DNA from: Anaeramoeba ignava BMAN
Taxonomy: Eukaryota > Protista > Anaeramoebae
NCBI GenBank assembly: GCA_028826165.1
Contig: JAPDFW010000089.1
Span: forward strand, 124,001 to 188,000
Direction of reading: 5' to 3'
DNA length: 64,000 nucleotides
Shown: positions 1,449 through 58,100 of the stretch, in pieces
Layout: each line of letters opens with the position of its first letter
How positions within the stretch are numbered: the first letter of the stretch is position 1
Notes under the pieces: generated by a model
The model's input: only the letters and a program-made list of their open reading frames with translations
The model's database searches: none
Told to the model about the DNA's origin: nothing
Program-made: the position numbers and the translations under genes

Positions 1449-3678
1449 ATGATTACCAAAAATTCTCAAAAAAAAAGACGCAAACAAAATATTGATGATT
1501 TCAATCAATTTCCAATTAAACAAAATCGAAAAAATAAAGATCTAAAAAAAAATATTCAACAAAATAAAAGATAAAAACGAAATTTTTTATCAACAAAAAA
1601 AAGACGAATTTGAAAATCAAAACAAGAACGAGAATCAAGAAGAATTGAAGGGAATAAATAATAGTCAAGATGAGGAAAAAAAAGTTTTTTTAATTGACAA
1701 TAAAAATGGGGAAATCTCAATAGAAAATGGAAAAGAAAAAACAACAGAGAAGTATGAAAAAGAAGATTTTGCGCAAAGAAAAAGTGTTGTATTGAATTTT
1801 GAATCGGATGTAGCCAGTTCAGGTAAGGAATAAATTTGACAGAAGTTTAAATTTAAAACTGACATTTTTTTATTTAATTTTTTTTATTTAATTTTTTTTA
1901 TTTAATTTTTTTTAATCAAGCAATTGATATACTTTTTGATGATCTGTTGTTATCAATTTTCTCCTTTTTAGATAAACGCTCGCTTTGTAAATGTGAACTT
2001 GTATGTAATAAATGGAGAATATGTGCAAACGAAAGATTCTTATGGTCGAAAGTTAATCTCAAGGAAATTAACCGAAAGGTAAATGATATAAACATAGCCT
2101 GCCTGGCAAAGAAACATCCTGAGATGAGGGCGGTAAAGCTGCATAACTGCTCGCTGGTTTCGGATAAAGGAATTATGGCAATTTCTAGTCTTTGCAAAAA
2201 TATCAAGTGTTTCGATCTTGGTCACGATAACTTAAGAATAGCAAGAAGAAGCATCACTGACAATTCGCTGAAATGCTTTTCAAAATATTCACCAGAACTT
2301 GAGGCGTTGCGGATGGGACTTTGCACAAGAATAACAACGCGGGGGCTTGATACACTTTTTCGAGGATGCACAAATTTGAAATTTTTGGATCTCAGTCGGT
2401 GCTCACTTGCTGGAATACCAGAGTCCATTTCGCGGTTGGTACATTTGGAGTCACTTATTCTTGATGCGAACGATCTGGCGTCACTTGAGGATTGGGTATC
2501 TCAATTAGGAAATTTGAAGAGCTTACAATTGAGAGATAATCAATTGAGTCAATTACCTAAATGTCTGAAAAACCTGTCAAATCTGACAGCTTTGGATCTT
2601 GCAAACAATATCTTCTCATCTTTTCCTGACGAGTTATGTGGACTGACTTCGCTGCGGAGACTTGTATTATCCAACAACGTTATCACACAAATTTCGCCTC
2701 TAATTTCGGGACTTGAATTTCTTGAGGAGTTGCGGTTGGATCACAACGAGATCTCTTCACTACCTGTTGAGATCTGTGGTTTATCTCGGTTGCGAGTGTT
2801 ACGAATAAATAATAATCATGTTGTTCGTTTGCCAGTTCAAATTCATCAGCTGTCAAATTTGACAGTTCTTGATTTTTCTGATAATTCTTTGTTTGAACTT
2901 CCTGATTCTCTTGCTCATCTTCCTAATTTACGTTATCTTAAGCTTTTTAATAATAGGCTTACTCATCTTCCTGATTTACTTTCAAATTTATCTAGTTTGC
3001 AATCTTTATTTTTGAGTGATAATTTGATTTCTCGTTTTCCTGATTCTTTTTGTGATATTCAGTCTTTACGTTGTCTTGTTGTTCATAATAATAAGATTTT
3101 AGAGCTTCCTGATAATTTTGGAAGGTAATATTTAATTTTAATTTAAATTTAATTTAAATATTTAATTTTAATTTTTGATTTAAATATTAATATTTAATTT
3201 AAATATTTGATTTAATTTTGATTTGATTTAATTTTAATTTAATAGATTGAAAAATTTAGAACGTCTAGAATTGATTGGAAACAGACTTCAAAGATTTCCT
3301 GATTCCTTTTTTAAACTTCAAAAATTACAAACTTTATGGCTTGGTTTTAATTTTATTTCTTTTATTCCTGAAAAATTTTCACAACTTATATCTTTAAAAG
3401 AATTAGGACTTAATAATAATAATATTTCAAAAATTCCAGAAAAATTAACTTCTTTACAAAATTTGAAAACATTACACATTTTTAATAACAAAATTCCTGA
3501 AAAAGAATTTCAACCATTTCACAAAATAAAAAATTTACAAACTTTTCTATTCCATAATAATTCAATAAACTCTTCACAAAGAGAACAAACAAATCAACCT
3601 CCTCTTGAAATGATTCAAAATAATTTATTGCAAATCATTCAACACACATTTGCAAAAATGCCAAAAAGATTTATTTAA
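1449..3678 (+). CDS. F-box/leucine-rich repeat protein (3 exons; introns ~1823-1920 and ~3125-3245)
   Basis: F-box LFDDLLLSIFSFLDKRSLCKCELVCNKW, cysteine-containing LRRs (CSLVSDKGI, CTRITTRGL), then many LxxLPxxIxxLxxLxxL repeats. Exon 1 has homopolymer frameshifts. Confidence 0.85.
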
Positions 3679-19188: not shown

Positions 19189-22100
19189 ATGTTATCAATT
19201 TTTGGGATTTTCTCATTACCGTTCAGTATTTTTGTTTTAATTTTCTGTGCACATCATGGATTTCATTTTTTTGAATATGGGGGAATGGTTGTAACAATGA
19301 TTATATCACCATTAGAATACAATTTCCTATTTGAACCGATAGCAGAAAGCACTAAAAAAGTGTGGCAACCATCATATCTTTTTGAACCAAAAAACAACTC
19401 AACTGATTCATTATATATTACAATCATCCACTATTTTTATCTTTACTGCTATCTTGCAACTGCTATTCTCTGCTTTGGATTGTTTAAAAGATCTATCACT
19501 AGATGGCTTTGGCGCTGGCTTTTTGTTATTCCTTCTGGTTTCTTCTCTGCTTGCACTTGGGTCATGTTTATCCCAACTTTGCTTATAAGAATGTTCTTTA
19601 TTAGATCAGTTAGAAGTGGTATGTTCCCTTTTATTTTCTTTGCTCCTGCTGCTCTTTTTGGTTTGGTTGGTATTTTCCAAAGTTTATGGACTCGCCAATC
19701 AACTGTTCATCTTACTTTTGATCCTTCATCTTCTGAGTAAGAGAAGCATTTGCAACTTCATCAAAAATCAAATATAAATTAAATATAAATTAAATATAAA
19801 TTAAATATAAATCAAATTTAAATTAAATATAAATCAAATATAAATCAAATATAAATTAAATATATAAATTAAATATATAAATCAAATATAAATCAAATAT
19901 ATAAATTAAATTTAAATTAAATATAAATCAAATATAAATCAAATATAAATTAAATATATAAATTAAATATGAGAGATTCGAGGCACAAAAAAATAAATAA
20001 AAAAAAAAGCCTTTGAAAGCCTTTCATGCCCCAAAAATTATTCTATTCTCAATTAAATTTTTTTTTTCCTATAATTTTAATAAAAGATCTTATTTAAATT
20101 TTTTTTTTCCTATAATTTTAATAAAAGATCTTATTAAATTTTTTTTTCCTATAATTTTAATAAAAGATCTTATTTAATTTTTTTTTTCCTGAATTTGAAT
20201 TTAAAAGAAAAATTTTTGCTTGTTTTGATCCATTTTTCCTTTTCTTTTTTTTTTTGAAATGTCACTTTTTTTTGTTACTTTTTCAAACAAATTTGCGCTT
20301 TTTCAAGTTGAAAAAATAATCAATTTCAAAAATTTCCGGAAAGAAATTTCGTTCATCTTTTCTTTGAGGAATGAAATAAAATCATTCTACTATTTCTTTC
20401 TCCAAAAGAAAATTGAAATCAAAAATAATTCGAGTTTGGAAATCTTTGTTGGTTTGGTCAAGAAGAAACATGAGGATTTAGAAGTTTATGGAAATATTGG
20501 GGTTTTACACATAAATTATGAATCAAAGATTAAAAAAAACCTAAAAAAGGAAGTAAATGGAACAGTAAAGCAATTTATCCACAAGAATTCATTTCTTACT
20601 TTGAATGAGACCAATTTTTCTGTATATTGCTCAATATGCGATAAAGAACTCCAAGGAATCTCTAAATGGAAAATTCAAAGACATTGTAGGTCACAACATC
20701 ATCGCCTTCTTATTCCTTTGAATTTACAGCAACAGAAGAATGAAGGAAGATGCAACTTTGATTCAAAAGAATCAGCCTTACTTAGAATCCTAGAACATTT
20801 ACAAACGTTCTCAAACACAGATTTTTATTCCAGGAAAGAAATTCCAACTTATAGAACAGGCCTCTCTAAAAAAAGGATTTTCAAGCAAATATCTGATTCA
20901 TTACCCAATGTAGATTATAGAAAATTTTGCTTTTATTCGAGTCATTATTTCTGTTTGAAACACAATACACCAATTTTCTTCCAATGTGAAAAGTGTGCAA
21001 ATCCTAATCCTCAAAAAGTGGCGAATCACAGAAATAAAGTTCAAATGATGAGAAATTTCTTTAAAGATGAAGTACAAGATCCCACAAAACTAGTTATTAT
21101 TTTAGATTTCGGAGAGAACATACAAGAATATCGAGATGGGTGGAATACTCAAGAATTTTACATCAAAAATTCATGGGTTATCTTCAATATATGTTTAATT
21201 CAAGGAACTGAATTTGAATATTACGATTATATCTCAGAAGAGAAAAGCAAAGTAATGTTATAGAATTTAGAATTTAGAATTTACAAAAAAAACTTAAAAA
21301 AATCTTAATTTTGTTTTAGGATTCGGTATTTGTGATGGAATCTTTAGGAAAATTTGCACAAATTTTAGATCAAAAACAACGAAAAAAAAAACTAAATTCT
21401 TATGAAAGCATTTCAATTTTTAGTGACGGAGGATCTAGTCTCAAAAATAATTTGGTGATTCCAACAATAATTCAACTCTTCTCTTCTAATTTTAAGAAAA
21501 TTACCATTGGATATTTTCTCACAAATCATGGTAAAAATTACAGTGATGCCCATTTCGGCAATATTTCAAGAAATAGATCAAGCTTTGGGAATATAAGAAC
21601 AATTGAAGAGTTAGATAATTATCTGAAAACTCTGAAGAACACTTTTCCAACAATTATGTCAGTTGACCGTTCGATTAAATATTCCTACACACAAGGAATT
21701 CCATATCTGAAAAAAACTCATTTATTTTTTTATGATAAAGGTCATTTTGAAGCCTGGTTTAATCCCCAAAGAAGAGGACGTAAAAGAAGAATTCCAATAA
21801 TCAAGAAGATTCAAATTTATGATAAAGATTTAGCCAATCATAATTTTCAGATTCAAGATGTGAATGAAAAAAATCACTCAAAATTAATACAGCCAATATC
21901 TCAAAATCTTCCAATTTCAAGAAAGGAGAACGAAAAGGAGGTTGATAATCAACAAAAAGAAGAAAACCAAAAGCGACCATTTCTGAGCCAAAAAATTACA
22001 AAAAGCAAGAAAAGAAAAAATCAAATGATAGAAATTTATAACGAAAATCAACAAATTGAAAAGAAAAACAAATCTAACAAGATTCCTGAATTAGAAATTC

Positions 22101-25100
22101 AGAATTTACTTCCCTTAAACCAAAATTTGAATAGAGAAAACCAGGTAAAACTAAAAAAAAGAAAATATTTTCTTTTGTGTGCTTCTCTTTCTGATTTTCT
22201 TTGAATATTGTGTTTTATAGGTAATTCAAACAATCCCCAACTCTGGAAATTCATGTTATATCGCATCAATTGTCCAGATTTTGATCAGGACATCAGCTCG
22301 AAACCTTCTTCCTTTAGGAGATATCTCAGAAAAATTATGGGATATTTTTAATTCAAAGCAAAGATATATAGAAGTCCAAGATTTGAGAAAGGAAGTAGGT
22401 AAGCATTTTGTCAATTTTGATAATTTGAACCAACAAGATCTACACGAATTTTTTATTAATTTATTTGAATTATTGGACAAGGGAAACAATTTTAGATATT
22501 CCAGATAAAGATGATCTTTTGTATCATGCCTTTGATTTATGGAATAAAACTATTTTGAATGATTTTTGTATTCGCTTAATTCAAAAAGTGAAATGCTTGG
22601 AATGTAAACATTTTTCCTTTAGTTTTCCTCAAGAAACAGGTATACTGCTAAGTTTAGAAAAGTGAAAAAGATTGTAACTTAATAGAATTGCTCAATTCAT
22701 TTTTCTCAAAAATTACTTTTGATGAAAACAATCTCCTATTTTGTGAACATTGTCAAAAAGTTCAAAGTTCTTTCCAATTTTTTTTGAATTCATATTCCCA
22801 AATTTTTCATGATATTTGTCAAAAGAAGCTTCTATGATCCAATTTTGAAGGAAGAAAGAAAAAATATGGCAAGAATACAAGTTCCAAGAAAGATTCAACT
22901 TAATAATTTTTTATTCTCTCCTTCTAGTTCTATGTCAAACTCATTGTCATTTTGGGGATCAATTCATCACCAAGGAGAAGAACAAGAAGCAAAAGGAGGT
23001 CATTTCTGGACTGAAGTGAAAGATGAAAGAAATGCTGGAGATTTTCAAGTTTTTGATGATTCGACAACTTTGACTATTCCTAATCCTTGCCGGAAATCGA
23101 ATTCATATGTCTTGATGACATATCAAAGAGATGATAAGTAAATATTCCATTCAAATTCAACTAATCTCTTTTTTCTTTGATTGATTTTTCTTGATTGATT
23201 TTTTTTGATTGATTTTTTTTGATTGATTTTTTTTGATTGATTTTTCAAAAAATAAAAATTTCCCCATTAGCCTTTTGCGGCCTCAAATTTTCAGGTTTCA
23301 CAAAAGAATTTTTAATTTATTTTTCAATAAAAAGGGGAATTTTTTTTTAAATATTTTGAGATGTTTTTGCCTCTCCCTTTCTCTCATATATAAATCAAAT
23401 ATAAATCAAATATAAATTAAATATAAATTAAATATAAATTAAATATAAATCAAATATAAATTAAATATAAATTAAATATAAATTAAATATAAATCAAATA
23501 TAAATCAAATATAAATTAAATATAAATCTAATATAAATCAAATATAAATTAAATATAAATTAAATATAAATTAAATATAAATTAAATATAAATCAAATAT
23601 AAATCAAATATAAATCAAATATAAATCAAATATAAATCAAATATAAATTAAATATAAATTAAATATAAATTAAATATATATTAAATATAAATCTAATATA
23701 AAATCAAATATAAATCAAATATAAATCAAATATAAATTAAATATAAATTAAATATAAATTAAATATATATTAAATATAAATCTAATATAAATCAAATATA
23801 AATTAAATATAAATCAAATATAAATCAAATATAAATTAAATATAAAATCTAATATAAATTAAATATAAATTAAATATAAATCAAATATAAATTAAATATA
23901 AATTAAATATAAATTAAATATAAATCAAATATAAATTAAATATAAATCTAATATAAATTAAATATAAATTAAATATAAATTAAATATAAATCTAATATAA
24001 ATTAAATATAAATTAAATATAAATTAAATATAAATTAAATATAAATTAAATATAAATCAAATATAAATCAAATATAAATAAAATATAAATTAAATATAAA
24101 TTAAATATAAATCAAATATAAATCAAATATATAAATCAAATATAAATTAAATATAAATTAAATATAAATCAAATATAAATTAAATATAAATTAAATATAA
24201 ATTAAATATAAATTAAATATAAATTAAATATAAATTAAATATAAATTAAATATAAATTAAATATAAATCAAATATAAATCAAATATAAATCAAATATAAA
24301 TTAAATATAAATCAAATATAAATCTAATATAAATCAAATATAAATCAAATATAAATTAAATATAAATTAAATATAAATTAAATTTAAATCAAATATAAAT
24401 CAAATATAAATCAAATATAAATTAAATATAAATTAAATATAAATTAAATATAAATTAAATATAAATCAAATATAAATCAAATATAAATCAAATATAAATC
24501 AAATATAAATTAAATATAAATCAAATATTTATGTAAAATTCATTTTTTTAGATTAGAACCAGTTACCAAAAGAGATCGACAAAAATCCAAAAAGAAATAT
24601 TGGGAGAAAAAAAAAAAAGAAAAGAAGAATTGGAACACAATTAGAATTATTCAATTAACTGATATACATTTAGGACCTTTTATGAATAAAAGAAGATTAC
24701 TTGGAATTTGTAAATCCGCAATGAAAAAGAATCCACACCTTATATTTTTAACAGGAGATTTCTTAACAAGAGAAACAGAAACACCTCAAGGAGAACAAAT
24801 ACTTAGAGAAGGATTAGCTCCTTTTCAAAAATTAAAAGGAAATGTTTTTGCTTGTGTTGGAAATCATGATTATGCATATCTTCCTGGAATTGCTCATGGT
24901 AAAAATCAAATATTAAAAATCAAATATTAAAAAATATTAAAAATCAAATATTAAAAAATATTAAAAAATATTTAAAAATATTTAAAAAAAATAAATTTGG
25001 ATTTAAAATTAACTTTAGCACTTGAGGATAATGGAATTATTTTACTTAGAGATGAATCCCAAATCGTTAATTTAAGTAAATACAAGATCAAAAAAATCAA

Positions 25101-25707
25101 ATCATTTTATTAAAAAAGAAAAAAAAAATAAATCAAAAGAAAATTGTACTGTAGAAATTACAGGCTTTGATTTTGGAACTTCTGCAGCAGTTATGCAAGA
25201 TAGATTAGAAAGTAAAAAGGATGTTGATTTGAAACTTGCACTTCTTCATGATCCGCAAGCATTTGATAAACTTCCTCCAAAAGCAGGAGTAGTAACATTT
25301 TCAGGACATACACATGGAGGTCAACTAGGATTAAATTGGATCGGACTTCCTTACAGTTTTATTGGGTTATTTCTTCATGATCAAGGAGTAAAAAACAAAA
25401 TAATAAATTCAAAAAAAAAAAATTTTTTTGTTCCACTTTTTTTTATTTATATTTTCTCATTCCATTCCATTTATTTTAGGCTTATTCTTGCGCCCGAAAT
25501 TTACTATATATCCACAGAGGAACTTGCCATTATGGATTCCCTATTCGATTTGGTGTAAATGCAGAACAATCAACTATATTTCTTCACTTTACAAAAAATA
25601 CCCAAATAAAAAATCCAAAAACAAATGATACTGTTACACTTTCAGAAACTTCTTCAGGAGAACATCAAGAACTTTTAGATAATTCATTACAAAATAGAAT
25701 CAAATAA
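19189..25707 (+). CDS. Transmembrane calcineurin-like metallophosphoesterase (YkuE/TMPPE-like); intron 1 (19737-24551) hosts a transposon
   Basis: A hydrophobic exon 1 splices in phase 2 to exon 24552 (E-LEPVTK...TDIHLG). Motifs are DIH, TGD, GNHD, LLHDP, SGHTHGGQ and HRGT...PIRFG, with the stop at 25705-25707. Confidence 0.88.
20053..20190 (+). repeat. Left subterminal ~41-bp direct repeat (3 copies) of the transposon
   Basis: TTTTTCCTATAATTTTAATAAAAGATCTTATT occurs three times. Confidence 0.85.
20259..23141 (+). CDS. Sola2-like transposase-USP fusion (exons 20259-21251, 21320-22144, 22221-23141; three +1 homopolymer shifts in the USP part)
   Basis: C2H2 finger CSICDK...RHCRSQHH; transposase motifs LDFGEN, IFSDGG..KN and NHGKNYSDAHFG; USP motifs PNSGNSCYIASIVQ, QQDLHEFF, CLEC/CEHC, IFVKR and HHQG...GGHF...FDD. 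Both introns are phase-0 GT-AG. Confidence 0.82.
23386..24527. repeat. Intronic 11-bp array (AAATATAAATY)n, continuing 19770-19970 on the other side of the transposon
   Basis: The same unit is present on both flanks of the element. Confidence 0.92.
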
Positions 25708-43314: not shown

Positions 43315-45520
43315 TTAAATTCTGAAATTCCAAATTTTAACTGTTCCATCATTTGAACCTGTGATTACTTTTTCATTATCAACTTTCATTGAAGTAATTT
43401 CGGTATTTTCTCTGTGTTGATATTTTGAATATAATAATTTTCCTGTTCTAAAATCCCAGAAATAAACTGAAGAATCTTTAACATCACCAGAAGAAACAAC
43501 AGTATTTAAAGAAGGAGTTACAGATAAACACTAAAAATAATTTAGTTTAAATTCAAATTTTGATATTTAATATTCAATATTCAATATTCAATATTTATAA
43601 TTTAATATTCATAATTCAATATTTAATATTTAATATTGATAATTTAATATTTAATATTTAATATTTAATATTCATAATTTAATATTTAATATTCAATATT
43701 CAATATTCAATATTTAATATTCAATATTCAATGTTTAATATTCAATATTTAATATTTAATATTTAATATTCAAAATTCAATATTCAATATTCAATATTCA
43801 ATGTTTAATATTCAATATTTAATATTCAATATTCATAATTTAATATTTATAATTTAATATTTATAATTTAATATTCAATATTCAATATTTAATATTCAAA
43901 ATTTAATATTTAATATTTAATATTCAATATTCAAAATTTAATATTCAATATTCATAATTTAATATTTAATATTTAATATTCAATATTCAATATTAAAATA
44001 CTTTGACAGGACTTCGATGTCCATAAAATGTTTGAACAACTCTTCCACTTCTTAAATCCCATTTTTTAATCAAATGATCAACTGAGCCAGTGAGAAAAAC
44101 AGGATTATTATAAGGATTAAGAACTTCCAAACAAGTAATTGAATCAGTATGACCACCAGTAGAACCGAAACTTTTTTCATTTTCAATATCCCAAACTCGA
44201 GTAACACCATCCCAACCTCCAGAAACAATATTATGAGTGGAAGAAAGTGGATTCACTTTTTTTACAGTAACAACCCAATTCTTGTGTCCAGTTAGTGTAG
44301 TCTTCAATTCACCTTTTTCAATATCAAAAATTTTAATAGTTTTATCTGCACTACTTGTTATTGCTATATTTTTTTCAAGTTCAAGTGCAAAAATTGAGTT
44401 TGTGTGATTGTGTAATTTATGAAGTCTTTTTCCATTTTCTTTATCCCATACAATTAATTCCCCTCTCCAATCTCCACTTACGATATATTTTTCATTCATT
44501 TTTAAACAAACAACTCTATCTTTATGACCTTTAAGTTTATATTTCAATTTTGCTTTTTCAAGATCCCAAACACAAACCTAAATTCATTTATAAATTTAAA
44601 TAAAATTCATTTATAAAATTAATTAAAATCATTTATAAAAATAAAATTCATTTATAAAATTAAAATTCATTTATAAATTTAATATTCATTTATAAAATTA
44701 AAATTCATTTATAAAATTAAATTTAAATTAAATTCATTTATAAATTTAAATAAAATTCATTTATAAATTTAAATAAAATTCATTTATAAAATTAAATTTA
44801 AATAAAATTCATTTATAAAATTAAAATTCATTTATAAAATTCATTTATAAAATTAAATTCATTTATAAAATTAAATAATTCATTTATAAAATTAATATTA
44901 ATAAAGATCTTGTTTTAATAATTTTAAATATTCTTTTTCCAAAAAGATACCGTTGAATCCCATCCTCCAGAAACAGCTGTTAAACTATCAAAATCCATAT
45001 CAATACATTCAACCCAACCTTTATGACCTGAAAAAGTACCTTTATATTCAGGTTTTTGTTGAGCAAGATCATAAACAGACACAAAATTCTCATCTGTTCC
45101 AAAAAGTAACAAATCTTCTTCAATCGTAAGACATCTTACACCTCCTTTTGCTTCAATTGAAACAATTTCATAAGTTCCTTCTTTCCAATTTTTTTGGGTT
45201 TTTTTTTCAGAAACACAAACTGCAAACCAATTGATTCTTTTTTGATAAACCATATTGATTTCATATTCTTCGTTTGGCACTAAATCTTGCACATCTTTTT
45301 CTTGTAAATTAGTATTTGTGTTCGTGTTACTGAGCGTCAATGATGTTGTTCTTTCAAGATGTGGTTTTTGAATGAATTTTAAATATTCAAACCAAACCCG
45401 ACTTTTATCAGAAATTCTTTTAAATTGTTGACATGTTTGCCTTACATTAATTAATTCTTTTACAGTACAAAAATCAAAAATTTTGAGTAAAAGTATTGGT
45501 TTAATTGTTTGAATATTCAT
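43315..45520 (-). CDS. F-box/WD40 repeat protein (3 exons)
   Basis: N-terminal F-box (ILLLKIFDFCTVKELINVRQTCQQFK) and multiple GH...WD repeats; the final exon ends DGTVKIWNFRI*. Confidence 0.9.
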
Positions 45521-45603
45521 TTTTAAAAATTAATTTGGAAAAAAGCAAATACAAAAAGAAAAAAATGATTTTTATTTTTTCTTTTTTTTTCATTTTTTTT
45601 AAA

Positions 45604-47390
45604 ATGAATGAAATTTTATTTTTTGGAAGAAATCACAAACCAATTCTTTTAAAAAATGAACCAAAAGAAATTAAAAAACCAATTCAATTTAAATTTGAAA
45701 ATGAAAATGAAAATGAAAATGAAAATGAAAATGAAAAACAAATTAAACAAATTTCATCAGGTGAATTCGCAACAATTTTCCTTTTTGAAAATGGAAAAGC
45801 AATAGAATATTTAAATGATGATTCAAATCAAAATCCTTCAAAAATTCAAATTGAAGAAAATATTCAAAAAGTAACTGTTGAAGAAAATGAAGCTATTTTA
45901 ACAATAGAAGGAAATGTATTTGCAAAAGGAGAAAAAATAAATCCAAAATAATCCAAATGAATTTATCAATATTTCATCATTAATCATTGAAACAAATGAT
46001 AGAATAATTCAAGATATTGTTTCTGGAGCTAATTCAATTTACTTATTAACTTCAAATCAAAATGCTTATGGAATTGGTTCAAATTCTTATAGTCAACTTG
46101 GCGTTGATTCTAAAAGACTTTATAAAACACAAAAACCAATTTTAATGATGGAAAATGTTTCTAAAATATTTTCAGGAAATTCTTCAAATCATGTTTTCCT
46201 TTTAAATTCAAATCAAAAATTATTTGGATGTGGGAATAATTCTTCGAAACAACTTGGATTAGGAGAATCAAGAAAAGAAGAAACAGAAATACGAAAATTA
46301 ACCAAAATCCAAAATATCCCAAAAGGCAAAATAATTGATATTAAAACTGGGTATGTCCATTCAATAATGTTGATTGAAAATCAAAATCAAAAATCCAAAA
46401 AGAAAACTTTATTCATGTGGAAGATACTTTTTTAATGGACTTGGTAAAGAAAATGAAAATACCCATGAATTTACTGAAATCAAATCATCTTTATTTGAAA
46501 ATGATGATATTCTTGATTTTTCTGTTGGATGTTTTCATACTTTGATATTAACAGAAAAAGGAAAGATGATAGGATTTGGATTAAATTCTTCTTTTCAATT
46601 AGGATTTAAAGATACAGAAACACAATTAATTCCTATTCAAATTGAACTTCCTAAATTAAGATTTAATGAAGATATTTCTAATTATCATATTTCTTGTGGA
46701 GATTACAATTCATTTCTTTATTATTCTCATCCTCCTTTTTCCAATCTTGAAGAAGATTTGATGAAATTATTTGAAAGAAAAGAATTTTGTAATATTTCAT
46801 TTAAAACAGAAAATGGAGAAATAATTGAAGCTCATAAATTAATATTAAAATATAGATTAAATCAAGATGAAAATCAGATTGAAAAACTTCAAGAAATTAT
46901 TTCAAATAAATCAATTAAAGAATCAAATCAAATATTTGAAATGATTTATTCAAACAAAATAATAAATTCAAAATTATATTCAGAAATTAAAGAAATTATA
47001 AATTCCAATGAAAAAATTGAAGAAACAATGAAAAGAATTTATTTAAATGAAAATGAAAAAGATTTTATTATTGAAAGAAAAGAAAAACAATATAAATTTC
47101 CCAAATTAATATTAATAATGAGAAGTGAATTATATCGAGGAATGTTTTTATCTGTAACAGAAGATAAATCTAATAAAGTTACAGATTATAGTGAATTAAG
47201 TAATAAATCATTTCAAATATTTGAATATTGGATTTATTCAAATCAAATTAAAAATGAAATTAAAATTACACAAGAAATTATTGACGAACTAGAAACAGGA
47301 ATTGATTATTTTCAATTAAATCAAACAAATCCAAATTTATTTGATTTATTAATTAAAAAATTTAATAATCAAAATCAAAATCAAAATTAA
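45604..47390 (+). CDS. RCC1-repeat/BTB-domain protein, copy A (two +1 homopolymer shifts at ~45948 and ~46393)
   Basis: RCC1 repeats (GCGNNSSKQLGLG, GCFHTLIL) and BTB-like segments (EAHKLIL, LILIMRSELYRGMF); colinear with copy B. Confidence 0.8.
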
Positions 47391-47554
47391 AATTAAAATT
47401 AAAATCAAAATTAAAATTAAAATTATTTTGGAATTTAAAAATTATTAATAAATTTAAATTTAAAAACAAATTTCTAAATTAATATTAATTCAATTTAATT
47501 CAAAAAAAAAGATAAAATTTTAATTTCAAAAAAATCAATTTTCAAAATATTTTT

Positions 47555-48110
47555 AAATAATAAAATATTTAATTCTAAAACATTAAATTATTATTTTAAA
47601 CATAAAATTAAATATTAAATTATATTTTTAAATTAATTTATAAATTAAATATTAAATTAAATTTATTCTTATTTTTATATTTATATGTTAAATATTTAAA
47701 TAATAAAATATTTAAATTTAAAACAATAAATTATTATTTTAAACATAAAATTAAATTATTATTTTAAATATTTTAAATTAATTTTTAAAAATTTAAATAT
47801 TATTAAATTAAATCTATTCTCATTTTTATATTTATATGCTAAATATTTAAATAATAAAATATTTAAATCTAAAACATTAAATTATTATTTTAATAATGAA
47901 ATTAAATATTAAATTATATTTTTAAAATAATTTATAAATTAAATATTAAATTAAATCTATTCTTATTTTTTATATTTATATGTTAAATATTTAAATAATA
48001 AAATATTTAAATTTAAAACATTAAATTATTATTTTAAACATAAAATTAAATATTAAATTATATTTTTAAATTAATTTATAAATTAAATATTAAATTAAAT
48101 CTGTTCTCAT
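47555..48110. repeat. Tandem ~145-bp AT repeat (about 4 copies) between the convergent RCC1-BTB genes
   Basis: AAATAATAAAATATTTAA.T.TAAAACA.TAAATTATTATTTTAA starts at ~47555, 47698, 47849 and 47993. Confidence 0.75.
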
Positions 48111-48115
48111 TTTCT

Positions 48116-49855
48116 TTATTGATTTTGATTATTAAATTTTTTAATTAATAAATCAAATAAATTTGGATTTGTTTCATTTAATTGAAAATAATCAATTCCT
48201 ATTTGAAGTTCATCAATAATTTCTTGTGTAATTTGAATTTCATCTTTAATTTGATTTGAATAAATCCAATATTCAAGTATTTGAAATGATTTATTACTTA
48301 ATTCACTATAATCTGTAACTTTATTAGATTTATCATTTGTTACAGATAAAAACATTCCTCGATATAATTCACTTCTCATTATTAATATTAATTTTGGAAA
48401 TTTATATTTCTTTTCTTTTCTTTCAATAATAAAATCTTTTTCATTTTCATTTAAATAAATTCTTTTCATTGTTTCTTCAATTTTTTCACTTGAATTTATA
48501 ATTTCTTTAATTTCAGAATATAATTTTGGATTTATTATTGATCTGTTTGAATAAATCATTTCAAATATTTGATTTGATTCTTTAATTGATTTTTTTGAAA
48601 TAATTTCTTGAAGTTTTTCAAATTGATTTTGATTTTGATTTAATCTATATTTCAATATTAATTTATGAGCTTCAATTATTTCTCCATTTCTTGTTTTAAA
48701 TGAAATATCGCAAAATTCTTTTCTTTCAAATAATTTTATCAAATCTTCTTCAAGATTGGAAAAAGGAGGATGAGAATAATAAAGAAATGATTTTTGAAAT
48801 CCACAAGAAATATGATAATTAGAAATATTTTCATTAAATCTTAATTTAGGAAGTTCAATTTGAATTGGAATTAATTGTTCATTTTTATATTCAGTTCCTA
48901 ATTCTCCAAATCTATTATCTCCAAATCCAATTACTTTCCCTTTTGTTGTTAAAATCAAAGTATGATTAAATCCAACAAAAAAATCAAGAATATCATCATT
49001 TTCAAATAAAGATGATTTGATTTCAGTAAATTCATAAGTATCTTTATATTCATTACCAAGTCCATTATATCTCCAATCTCCACATGAATAAAGTTTTCTT
49101 TTTCGATTTTCATTTTCAATCAACATTATTGAATAAACACCTCCACATTGAATATCAATTATTTTGCCTTTTGGAATATTTTGGATTTTGGTTAATTTTT
49201 TGATTTTCCATTTTTCTTTTCTTGATTCTCCTAATCCAAGTTGACCATCACTATTATTGCCACATCCAAATAATTCTTGATTTGAATTTAAAAGAAAAAA
49301 ATGAAATGAAGAATTTCCTGAAAATATTTTAGAAACATTTTCCATCATTAAAATTGGTTTTTGTGTTTTTTTAAGTGTTTTAGAATCAACGCCAAGTTGA
49401 CCATATTTATTTGAACCAATTCCATAAACATTTTGATTCGAATTTAATAAATAAATTGATTCGTAACCAGAAACAGTATCTTGAATTATTCTATCATTTG
49501 TTTCAATGATTAATGATGAAATATTGATAAATTCATTTGTATTATTTGGATTGATATCTATTCCTTTGGCAAATACATTTTCTTCTATTGTTAAAATAGC
49601 TTCATTTTGATAACCAGCAGATACTTTTTGAATATTTTCAATTTGGATTTTATGAGGATTTTGATTTGAATTTCTTAAATATTCTATTGCTTTTCCATTT
49701 TCAAAAAGGAAAATTGTTGAATAAACACTCGGTGAAATTTGTTTAATTTGTTTTTCATTTTCAAATTTAAATTGAGTTGGTTTTGTTATTATATCTGGTT
49801 CATTTTTGAAAAGTTTTGAATATTGATTTCTTCCAAAAAATAAACAATCATTCAT
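48116..49855 (-). CDS. RCC1-repeat/BTB-domain protein, copy B (intact, intronless)
   Basis: 579-aa ORF with GSNKYGQLG, GNNSDGQLGLG and GDNRFGELG repeats, then two BTB-like segments. Confidence 0.9.
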   Translation of the reverse strand: MNDCLFFGRNQYSKLFKNEPDIITKPTQFKFENEKQIKQISPSVYSTIFLFENGKAIEYLRNSNQNPHKIQIENIQKVSAGYQNEAILTIEENVFAKGIDINPNNTNEFINISSLIIETNDRIIQDTVSGYESIYLLNSNQNVYGIGSNKYGQLGVDSKTLKKTQKPILMMENVSKIFSGNSSFHFFLLNSNQELFGCGNNSDGQLGLGESRKEKWKIKKLTKIQNIPKGKIIDIQCGGVYSIMLIENENRKRKLYSCGDWRYNGLGNEYKDTYEFTEIKSSLFENDDILDFFVGFNHTLILTTKGKVIGFGDNRFGELGTEYKNEQLIPIQIELPKLRFNENISNYHISCGFQKSFLYYSHPPFSNLEEDLIKLFERKEFCDISFKTRNGEIIEAHKLILKYRLNQNQNQFEKLQEIISKKSIKESNQIFEMIYSNRSIINPKLYSEIKEIINSSEKIEETMKRIYLNENEKDFIIERKEKKYKFPKLILIMRSELYRGMFLSVTNDKSNKVTDYSELSNKSFQILEYWIYSNQIKDEIQITQEIIDELQIGIDYFQLNETNPNLFDLLIKKFNNQNQ

Positions 49856-49943
49856 TTTTGAAATGAAAAAAATGAAAAAAATAATTTTGGAATTTTAATT
49901 TTATTTTTAATTTTAATTTTAATTTTAATTTTAATTTTGAAAA

Positions 49944-54881: not shown

Positions 54882-55139
54882 TTTAATTTTTAAATTTTAA
54901 TTTTTAAAAAGAAGAGAAAAAGAAGAAAATGAAAAAAAAAATGAAAAAAAAAATTAAAAAAAGATAAAAAGTGATTAAATTTATTTTTGGGATTTCTTTT
55001 TTAATAGCAATTTTTTAAACAAAACAAAGAAAAAACAAAACAAAAAAAAAAGGAAAAAAAAAGATCAATTAAAAAAGAAAAAAGAAAAAATTTTTCAAAT
55101 CCAAATTCAAATTCAAATTCAAATTTTAAATTTTAAATT

Positions 55140-58100
55140 TTAAATTAAAAGATCAAAAATGTTTAAAAAAAGTAACATCTTGAAATTCATCAGTAACTCC
55201 TTCAGGTGTACCTTTTATCCAAGGATGTTCCAATATATCTTTTGCAGTAAGACGATATTCAGGATCAGCAACCAAAATTCTTCTAATCAAATTAATAGCT
55301 AAAATAAAAATAATTTAAAAATAAAATTTAAAAATAAAAATCTAAAATAAAAATTTAAAAATCTAAAATAAAAATACCAGCAATAGAAACTTTTGGAGAA
55401 TTTGGAATAACATAATCCATATCTAATATTTGATTTGGTAAAGATTTTTCTTTTCTTTCTTCAGAAAAAGGTAATTTTCCAAACAATCTTCAAATAAAAA
55501 TAAATTAAAAATTAAAATGCAAATTCAAATTAAAATTATAAATTAAAATTACAAGAAAAAAAGAATAATTCCACAAGACCAAATATCACAAGATTTTCCA
55601 TAACCACCACGACCAGCTTTTCTAATAACTTCAGGTGCTAAATAATGAAAAGTTCCAAGAAAAGTATTCATTTTTTGACTTTGTTGAATAATTTTTCCAA
55701 ATCCAAAATCAGTAATTTTAATTTTTGTATCATCAGTAGGAGAAACAAGAAGAATATTTTCAGGCTTTAAAAGTAAATTTAAAAATAAATTTCAAAATAA
55801 ATTTCAAAATATATTTAAAATAAATTTCAATATAAATTTCAATATAAGTTTAAATATAAATTTGAAAATAAATTTCAATATAAATTTCAAATATAAATTT
55901 CAATAAATTCAATTTCAAAATATAAATTTCAAAATAAATTTCAATATAAAAAATAAATTTCAAAATATAAATTTCAAATTTTAAATATAAATTTCAAAAT
56001 ATAAATTTAAATATAAATTTAAATATAAATTTCAATATAAATTTCAAAATAAATTTCAATACTTAAATTTAAAAATAAATTTCAAAATAAATTTAAAAAT
56101 AAATTTAAATATAAATTTTAAATATAAATTTCAATATAAATTTCAATATAAATTTCAATATAAATTTCAAAATAAATTTCAATATAAATTTAAATTTCAA
56201 ATATAAATTTCAATATAAATTTCAATATAAATTTCAATATAAATTTCAATATAAATTTCAATATAAATTTCAAAATAAATTTCAATTTAAATTTCAAAAT
56301 AAATTTTAAAATATAAATTTCAAAAAATAAATTTCAAAATAAATTTAAATATAAATTTAAAAGTAAATTTAAATATAAATTTAAAATATAAATTTCAATA
56401 TAAATTTAAAATATAAATTTAAATAAATTTCAATATAAATTTAAATATAAATTTCAATACAAAATATAAATTTGAATATAAATTTAAAAATAAATTTAAA
56501 TATAAATTTAAATATAAATTTCAATATAAGTTTAAATATAAATTTAAATATAAGTTTAAAATAAATTTCAAAATATAAATTTAAAAATAAATTTCCAAAA
56601 TAAATTTTAAAATATAAATTTAAAAATAAATTTTAAATTTAAATATAAATTTGAATATAAATTTCAAAATAAATTTCAATATAAATTTGAATATAAATTT
56701 GAATATAAGTTTAAAAATTAAATTTATATAATTTAAATATAAATTTCAATATAAATTTGAATATAAATTTAAATATAAATTTGAATATAAGTTAAAAAAG
56801 TAAATTTAAAAGTAAATTTGAATATAAATTTAAAAGTAAATTTAAATATAAGTTTAAATATAAATTTAAATATAAATTTCAATATAAATTTAAATATAAA
56901 TTTGAATATAAATTTGAAAATAAATTTAAAAATAAATTTAAAAATAAATTTAAATATAAGTTTAAATATAAATTTTTAAATTTAAATATAAATTTAAAAT
57001 AAATTAAATATCAAAATATAAATTTCAATATAAATTTCAATATAAATTTCAATATAAATTTAAATATAAATTTCAAAATAAATTTCAATATAAATTTAAA
57101 TATAAATATAAATTTGAATATAAGTTTCAATAAAAATATAAATTTGAATATAAATTTCAATATAAGTTTAAAATATAAATTTAAGTAAAATTTCAAGTAA
57201 GTTTAAAAGTAAATTTAAATATAAGTTTAAAATGCTAAATTTAAAAGTAGATTTAAAATAAATTTAAATATAAGTTTAAAAATAAATTTGAAAGTAAATT
57301 TGAAAGTAAATTTAAAAGTAAATTTAAATATAAATTTGAATATAAGTTTAAAAGTAAATTTAAAAGTAGATTTAAATATAAAGTTAGAAATAAATTTTTT
57401 TTTAATTATAAAAAATACTTTTAAATCTCTATGTGCAATATTTCGTGAATGAAGATAATCAATTGCTGTAATTAATTGTTGAAATATAATTCGAGAATCC
57501 TCTTCTGAATATTGTCCTTTTAAACCAATTTTTTTTAATAAATCACCACCAGCACAACTAATTTAAATTTAAAAATTATATGTAAAATTTCTTTGTAAAT
57601 TTTATTATTAAATTATAGTTCATTTTTTACTATTCAAGAACAATAAAGAAAAGTTTTGGTGTTTCAAAAACATCTCTAATAGAAATTATATTTTGATGAC
57701 GAATTCTTTTCAGAACATTAACTTCATCCATTATTTTATCTCTTCCTGGTCTTTGTGGCTTTTATTTTTTAAAAATTTCCATTTTAAAAGTTTTTTTTTT
57801 AATTAAAATAAATTTTTGAAATTTCAAGTTTTTAAATATTTTACAAATTTGGATTTATCAATAATTTTAACTGCATATCTTTTCTGTGTTTCTTTTTCAA
57901 TACAAACTTTAACAATAGCATAATGCCCTCTAAAAAATAAATTGATTTGAATTTGATGTTTTTAATTTAAAAATTATGTATTTTTTCAAATTTTTTAGCT
58001 TTTTAAAATTCAATTAACAAATTACTTTCCAATAACATTAATTATTTCGTATTGTTCGTAAAATTTAATCTATTTTAATTAAGGAAATATATTTAAAATC

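Follow-up and report, generated by a model that had tools for sequence, protein, structure and literature searches.

A probable Sola2-type transposon of Anaeramoeba ignava whose transposase appears to be fused in frame to a USP/C19 domain

The element and its gene

A stretch of 64,000 nucleotides of the Anaeramoeba ignava BMAN genome (assembly GCA_028826165.1, contig JAPDFW010000089.1, positions 124,001 to 188,000 of the forward strand; hereafter, the window) contains a 3,415-bp transposon of family A at positions 19971-23385, plus strand. Its GAGAGA...TCTCTC ends and the ATAT duplication on both sides (19967-19970 and 23386-23389) were all present, as proposed in an earlier sequence-only reading, with a perfect terminal inverted repeat (TIR) of just 6 bp. 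In the left end (19971-19990, plus strand), GAGAGA is followed by a GAGGCA motif that recurs in the right end (23366-23385, plus strand) with a 3-nt offset, and the initial 13 nt coincide with the left end of family C. Two subterminal tandem repeats were found on the same strand, namely, a 41-bp unit in 3.4 copies (20053-20190) and a 14-bp unit (23170-23246) whose copy number varies among the copies of the element.

The host site of the element is an AT-rich 11-bp satellite (19765-19970 and 23388-24528). In silico removal of the element leaves a 13-nt variant of the satellite unit that is also present elsewhere in that array, which agrees with the proposed restoration of the satellite. The target-site duplication (TSD) is ATAT in all 11 of the 11 complete copies of families A, B, and C; these sites are mostly preceded by A and have flanks of 0-18% GC. 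Perfect TIRs comprise 6 bp in families A and C and 8 bp in family B, with offset shared motifs located further inward; TIRs of 11 bp or more have been reported for Sola elements (PMC10741241).

The gene is encoded on the plus strand in three exons. Exon 1 (20259-21251, 331 codons) encodes a PB1-like domain, a C2H2 finger, a CxxC...H motif, and the first catalytic Asp (21105). Exon 2 (21320-22144, 275 codons) contains the second and third catalytic Asp (21425 and 21545), followed by a basic low-complexity linker with stretches resembling nuclear localization signals. Exon 3 (22221-23141) encodes the USP/C19 domain, with the Cys codon at 22254-22256, the QQD box at 22431, the His box at 22995-23006, and FDD at 23052; it is broken in the window copy. 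The two phase-0 GT-AG introns suggested earlier were found at 21252-21319 (68 nt) and 22145-22220 (76 nt). Intron 1 is found at the corresponding place in families B, C, D, and E; intron 2 recurs in B and D with position and phase unchanged, lies nearby in E, and is absent in C. Every transposase motif (DFGEN 21105, SDGG 21422, HGKNYSD 21527) and USP motif (NSGNSCY 22239, QQD 22431, CxxC 22594 and 22742, GGHF 22995, FDD 23052) quoted in that reading is present in the window copy.

As for the N-terminal sequence, residues 1 to about 88 (20259-20525) were modeled by AlphaFold2 as a beta-grasp domain with a predicted local distance difference test score (pLDDT) of 87.6. The top 10 structural matches of this model were all PB1 domains (best Z 10.4, root-mean-square deviation 2.1 Å over 79 residues), and the top 12 Foldseek matches were likewise all PB1, but none had E<0.001. 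The Pfam PB1 profile gave no sequence match for the N-terminus, and no clear acidic OPCA stretch was seen by eye in the alignment of the domain. It is assigned here as PB1-like by its predicted fold; the earlier reading had overlooked this domain. The C2H2 zinc finger (20628-20702) is BED/Spin-doc-like (Pfam zf-C2H2_12, E 0.029), and zf-BED exceeds the cut-off in family B.

The three catalytic Asp residues are invariant in 6/6 aligned relatives, which share the motifs D(F/Y), SDG, and HxxxxxDxHFG. Comparison by eye found the same motif series in the published Sola2_DFa-2 and Sola2_PPa-1 proteins (PMC3627910). The spacing of the catalytic residues is 84/40 here vs 87/43 in Sola2_DFa-2, the latter counted by hand. 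GAG...CTC termini are present in families A, B, and C, and also in DFa-2, but not in PPa-1. The termini of Sola2 elements are said to have been given by Bao in 2009 as GRG...CYC. The ATAT duplication fits the AWWT-type TSD described for Sola2 (PMC3627910). In addition, the model of the transposase core of family C (mean pLDDT 71) has an RNase H-like fold, and the structure search returned RNase H-fold matches that include the IstA (E 2.7e-4) and Mos1 (E 5.4e-4) transposases. The target site of Sola3 elements is TTAA, which occurs in 0/11 copies. Motif order, DDD spacing, ends, and TSD all agree with the Sola2-type assignment made earlier, and the transposase very likely belongs to Sola2.

The C-terminal domain was confirmed as USP/C19. 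The Pfam UCH profile (cut-off 23.9 bits) matched the first piece of exon 3 of the window copy with E 6.4e-9, and the open exon 3 of another family-A copy, L004, with E 4.9e-22 (79 bits, residues 7-299); the scores were 93 bits in family B and 132 bits in family C. The best PDB sequence matches were the catalytic domains of USP8, USP15, and USP4/11 (E 3.5e-13 to 1e-6). Families A-D all retain the catalytic Cys and His, and the whole set of Cys, His, Asp/Asn, and oxyanion Asn is present in A, C, and D; family B has Ser-Asp replacing Asp-Asp. In the window copy, the catalytic residues are present in pieces split by frameshifts.

The in-frame joining of the two domains is supported by comparison between families. 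In family C, a single 570-codon open reading frame (ORF) without introns encodes the whole USP together with the latter half of the core of the transposase, SDGG and HGKSACDRHF included. In families A, B, and D, intron 2 is located four codons ahead of the "IPN" of the Cys box. In the window copy, 22220 is the sole AG after its pyrimidine tract. In families A and B, no ATG occurs between the donor of intron 2 and the catalytic Cys, for which reason the USP was not taken to be a gene of its own there. Both junctions are used by the NCBI models of two family-A copies (KAJ5069497.1 and KAJ5070410.1). At the family level, the comparative sequence evidence thus supports a real fusion of a Sola2-type transposase with a USP.

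Copies and related loci in the genome

Family A is represented by five full copies on five contigs, with flanks that are all different and the same ATAT duplication, so that the element is not a chance arrangement. The earlier suggestion to look for copies with differing 4-bp TSDs has no bearing here, as every duplication reads ATAT. Four of the copies are 9-24 substitutions apart; the fifth (L005, G000:C105) differs by 50-56. In its USP exon, substitutions are clustered in the equivalent of window positions 22294-22579, where 125 codons share 86% amino acid identity with L004, and the frame is shifted and restored again ahead of the His box; the sequence may be unpolished here, or there may have been exchange with a subfamily. 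Of the six family B copies, which are 13-24 substitutions apart, five are complete and have GAGTGATT ends and the ATAT duplication. Family C consists of one 4,629-bp copy with GAGAGA ends and the ATAT duplication, and family D is also single-copy.

In total, the USP is borne by five diverged families (A-E), four of which the earlier reading had not noticed; the measured identities between their transposase regions are 31-45%. Between A and B, identity is 40% in the USP, 44-45% in the transposase, and 28% in the linker; the USP changes about as fast as the transposase. The nonsynonymous divergence (dN) of 0.54 vs a synonymous divergence (dS) of about 1.5 (dN/dS roughly 0.36) speaks for selection on the USP. 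Family E has a fragment only (L041, G000:C67, about 24000-25600, minus strand), comprising transposase pieces and the USP Cys box. Next to these comes an ORF of 955 codons in which motifs of endonuclease and reverse-transcriptase type were identified by eye; it is possibly a non-LTR insertion that truncated the family E element. A decayed or deleted relative (L042, G000:C73, about 208400-211900) retains a right end with 88% identity, a USP fragment with 81% identity, and a transposase segment that occurs twice. Altogether, 14 of the UCH loci of A. ignava lie on transposons; the NCBI names of the models checked for such loci are ordinary USPs or hypothetical proteins, and a 973-aa NCBI protein is a 100% match to family C.

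Two Sola2 relatives in the same genome have no USP. L039 (G000:C142, about 102300-105900, minus strand) is a Sola2-type relative with a 1,200-codon single ORF that contains Q/N repeats and a PB1-like segment, and has a C-terminal CCHC knuckle replacing the USP; L043 (C57) contains a decayed relative. L040 (G000:C51:33030-34886) encodes a Sola2-like transposase with a helix-turn-helix region and has a transcript-derived EukProt protein, P0029. Further Sola2-like transposase matches are located at G000:C64:165686, C62:271109, C92:59492, and C74:79092, and the UCH search of the genome found no match neighboring these four.

Several other loci were recorded in the course of the analysis. Two left-end-like sites (ATAT GAGAGATTTGAGG) lie on the same strand at G000:C89:85422 and 87164, 1,742 bp apart, and non-autonomous or tandem elements are possible there. 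At L045 (G000:C61, about 370900-373900), a tyrosine-recombinase ORF, Crypton-like by eye, adjoins a Harbinger-like ORF running into a Sola2 fragment; NCBI joins these ORFs as one protein (P0028), and they are probably nested elements. Downstream of family D, an ORF resembling the N-terminus of an IS630/Tc1-type transposase was found (L038, G000:C26, near 55000-55700). Outside A. ignava, the matches were only USP-less or truncated Sola2-like fragments in short metagenome contigs (P0027, P0030, L067, and L068). Homology searches found no homologue of the element in viral contigs, and no Sola-USP fusion of A. flamelloides or Trichomonas appeared in such searches, whose sensitivity was low.

In the window itself, ORFs 1878-3125, 43996-45529, and 46374-49894 were judged by eye to be F-box-like, F-box/WD40-like, and RCC1/BTB-like, respectively, and similar genes flank other loci in the genome. 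The relevance that had been attached to this neighborhood adds little to the interpretation: the copies lie on unrelated contigs at AT-rich ATAT sites, and the neighbors are unlikely to matter because the copies are scattered.

Interpretation and rival explanations

Taken together, the data point, with a probability of about 0.72, to a recently mobile cut-and-paste transposon of Sola2 type, in which a single spliced gene encodes a PB1-like domain, a C2H2 finger, a DDD transposase, a basic linker, and a USP/C19 domain. In the USP tree, built with 16 host USPs and 20 others, the four element USPs formed one clade (support 100/99), which fits a single capture; in the sampled tree they sit apart on a long branch to which no donor could be assigned. 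We infer from this sequence comparison that the USP was captured once by the element lineage. The transposase tree (160 columns) did not resolve whether the USP families form one clade (support 50/79).

Several points weigh against this reading. The dS between the A and B USPs is near saturation. The branches of the USP tree are long, and its host sample comprises just 16 USPs. The NCBI models that use both junctions bridge the frameshifts with invented micro-introns and are thus weak evidence of splicing. In length-limited searches, none of the USP-bearing families yielded a transcript-derived protein, while the USP-less L040 has one. Finally, the existence of L039 and L040 indicates that Sola2 elements can do without the USP.

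Under the preferred reading, the spliced protein would bind the element ends and cut and paste at ATAT, and the PB1-like domain, judged from its fold only, would probably aid oligomerization. The USP would work in cis as part of the transposase, taking a putative active deubiquitinase to the site, where it could deubiquitinate the transposase or transpososome and thereby shield it from proteasomal turnover. This self-protection from ubiquitin-dependent turnover is our leading guess, at roughly even odds, ahead of the editing of repair or chromatin marks; it has a precedent in the role proposed for the active VTD enzymes of Helitrons. In families A and B, retention of intron 2 would yield a transposase lacking the USP, in the window copy through a stop at 22202-22204, and regulated splicing is possible.

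The USP may instead act mainly on the host, deubiquitinating histones or repair factors where the element is excised or inserted, or countering ubiquitin-dependent silencing. The anatomy would be the same as for self-protection, the tether to a DNA-binding transposase would put the enzyme on chromatin, and a role in DNA repair has been proposed for transposon Ulp1 and OTU domains (PMC2836005). However, the USP tree contains no close histone- or PCNA-deubiquitinase relative of the element USPs, and action on the host is considered the less probable, though serious, alternative.

As for the state of the window copy, the open frame of approximately 910 aa expected there is not present in the assembled sequence. 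Single-base insertions (G 22481, A 22658, and G 22786) split 22221-23138 into four frame segments, and a further, self-compensating shift is located at 22713-22717. The exon ends only seem to be in frame (331+275+306=912 codons) because the three insertions cancel in length. True decay, in which the insertions are real and only a truncated USP is made, would account for the frameshifts as they stand in the sequence, and the insertion G 22786 extends no homopolymer. Against it, the indels are mostly private to each copy and almost as frequent as substitutions, with 1-4 indels vs 5-9 substitutions in the four close copies; exon 3 is open (306 codons) in L002 and L004, which both carry their own indels in exon 1. 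Moreover, among the 22 homopolymers that a single copy has in shortened form, 20 stop at exactly 5 nt, including the one at 22754 in the window USP exon, and the single-copy family C is open throughout. Homopolymers ending at five bases are a signature of early nanopore basecalling. Short-read polishing is presumably poor in multi-copy repeats, and the A. ignava assembly was made from MinION reads (PMC11550330). Thus, the frameshifts are probably assembly errors, and decay of this copy is unlikely. Programmed frameshifting or micro-introns were rejected as the cause of the breaks, since the four other copies lack the extra bases.

An extended version of the preferred reading, in which the PB1-like oligomerizer and the USP form a self-contained ubiquitin counter-defense module convergent with plant PB1/C48 elements, the splicing of intron 2 switches between a bare and a deubiquitinase-armed transposase, and the USP is needed for transposition, is speculative and rather doubtful. 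That the USP is a passenger host fragment without a role for the element is highly improbable: Sola2 elements do swap their 3' cargo, with Fanzor in Dictyostelia (PMC3627910), a CCHC tail in L039, and none in L040, but the USP is kept in five families with its catalytic residues and in-frame intron, and at a rate of change similar to that of the transposase. A domesticated host USP gene, which the NCBI name "ubiquitin carboxyl-terminal hydrolase" and the single-copy families C and D would suggest, is hardly credible, given that the ends are intact and flanked by TSDs, that near-identical copies are dispersed in the genome, and that the DDD triad is present.

Comparison with known transposons

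The uptake of ubiquitin/SUMO proteases has occurred repeatedly in unrelated transposon groups, and the literature consulted only speculates on the reason. The 3.4-kb one-gene element, with short ends, a fixed ATAT target, and recent copies, offers a compact system for testing the role of the protease; the intron-less natural fusion of family C and the USP-less relatives in the same genome would allow a clean comparison of wild type and Cys mutant. In addition, the annotation is corrected, as A. ignava loci named as USPs are transposon-borne.

Ulp1 or OTU proteases are known from Ginger1 and Mutator elements, and OTU and VTD from Helitrons; in Trichomonas vaginalis, the protein XP_001314237.1 combines an IS5-like transposase_11 with Peptidase C19 (PMC2836005). 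The earlier remark that no described Sola transposase-USP fusion was known held in the literature searched, outside which lay Repbase Reports and many subscription papers; no paper on such a fusion or on Anaeramoeba transposons was found. C19 on a transposase itself nevertheless has a precedent in XP_001314237.1. Only the pairing of Sola with C19 looks new, as fusions of transposases with Ulp1, OTU, VTD, and C19 proteases are already known.

The closest resemblance is to Sola2 elements such as DFa-2 of Dictyostelium fasciculatum and PPa-1 (PMC3627910), which share the series CPxC...H, DFKEN-like, SDG, and HGKSxxDRHF. Common features also include a 4-bp AWWT-type TSD, variable 3' cargo, and, in DFa-2, GAG...CTC ends. 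Unlike the published Sola2 elements, that of A. ignava has an in-frame C-terminal USP, an N-terminal PB1-like domain, a strict ATAT target, and perfect TIRs of 6-8 bp; the cargo of dictyostelid Sola2 is a separate Fanzor gene, whereas here the USP is fused. The T. vaginalis protein, likened here by its description only, resembles the element in having C19/USP and a DDE transposase on one protein in another metamonad, but its transposase belongs to an unrelated superfamily, from which we infer an independent pairing.

Ginger1 similarly has one spliced gene for a transposase and a C-terminal ubiquitin/SUMO protease, but with a Gypsy-like integrase and an OTU or C48 protease rather than C19 (PMC2836005). 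In plant Mutator-like elements, PB1 and a ubiquitin-like protease occur in the same transposon clades, with a Mutator transposase, long TIRs, and a C48 protease as differences (PMC4948706); the combination of PB1 and protease in both looks like convergence. The VTD domains of Helitrons are active deubiquitinases, the zebrafish enzymes cleave K48/K63 chains, and an anti-degradation role was proposed for them (PMC9741609). Helitrons with VTD or OTU thus also carry a deubiquitinase, but they are rolling-circle elements and the enzyme is of another class. Finally, the Cys box, QQD box, finger CxxC pair, and His box of USP8, USP15, and USP4/11 align with those of the element USPs, although the identity is low.

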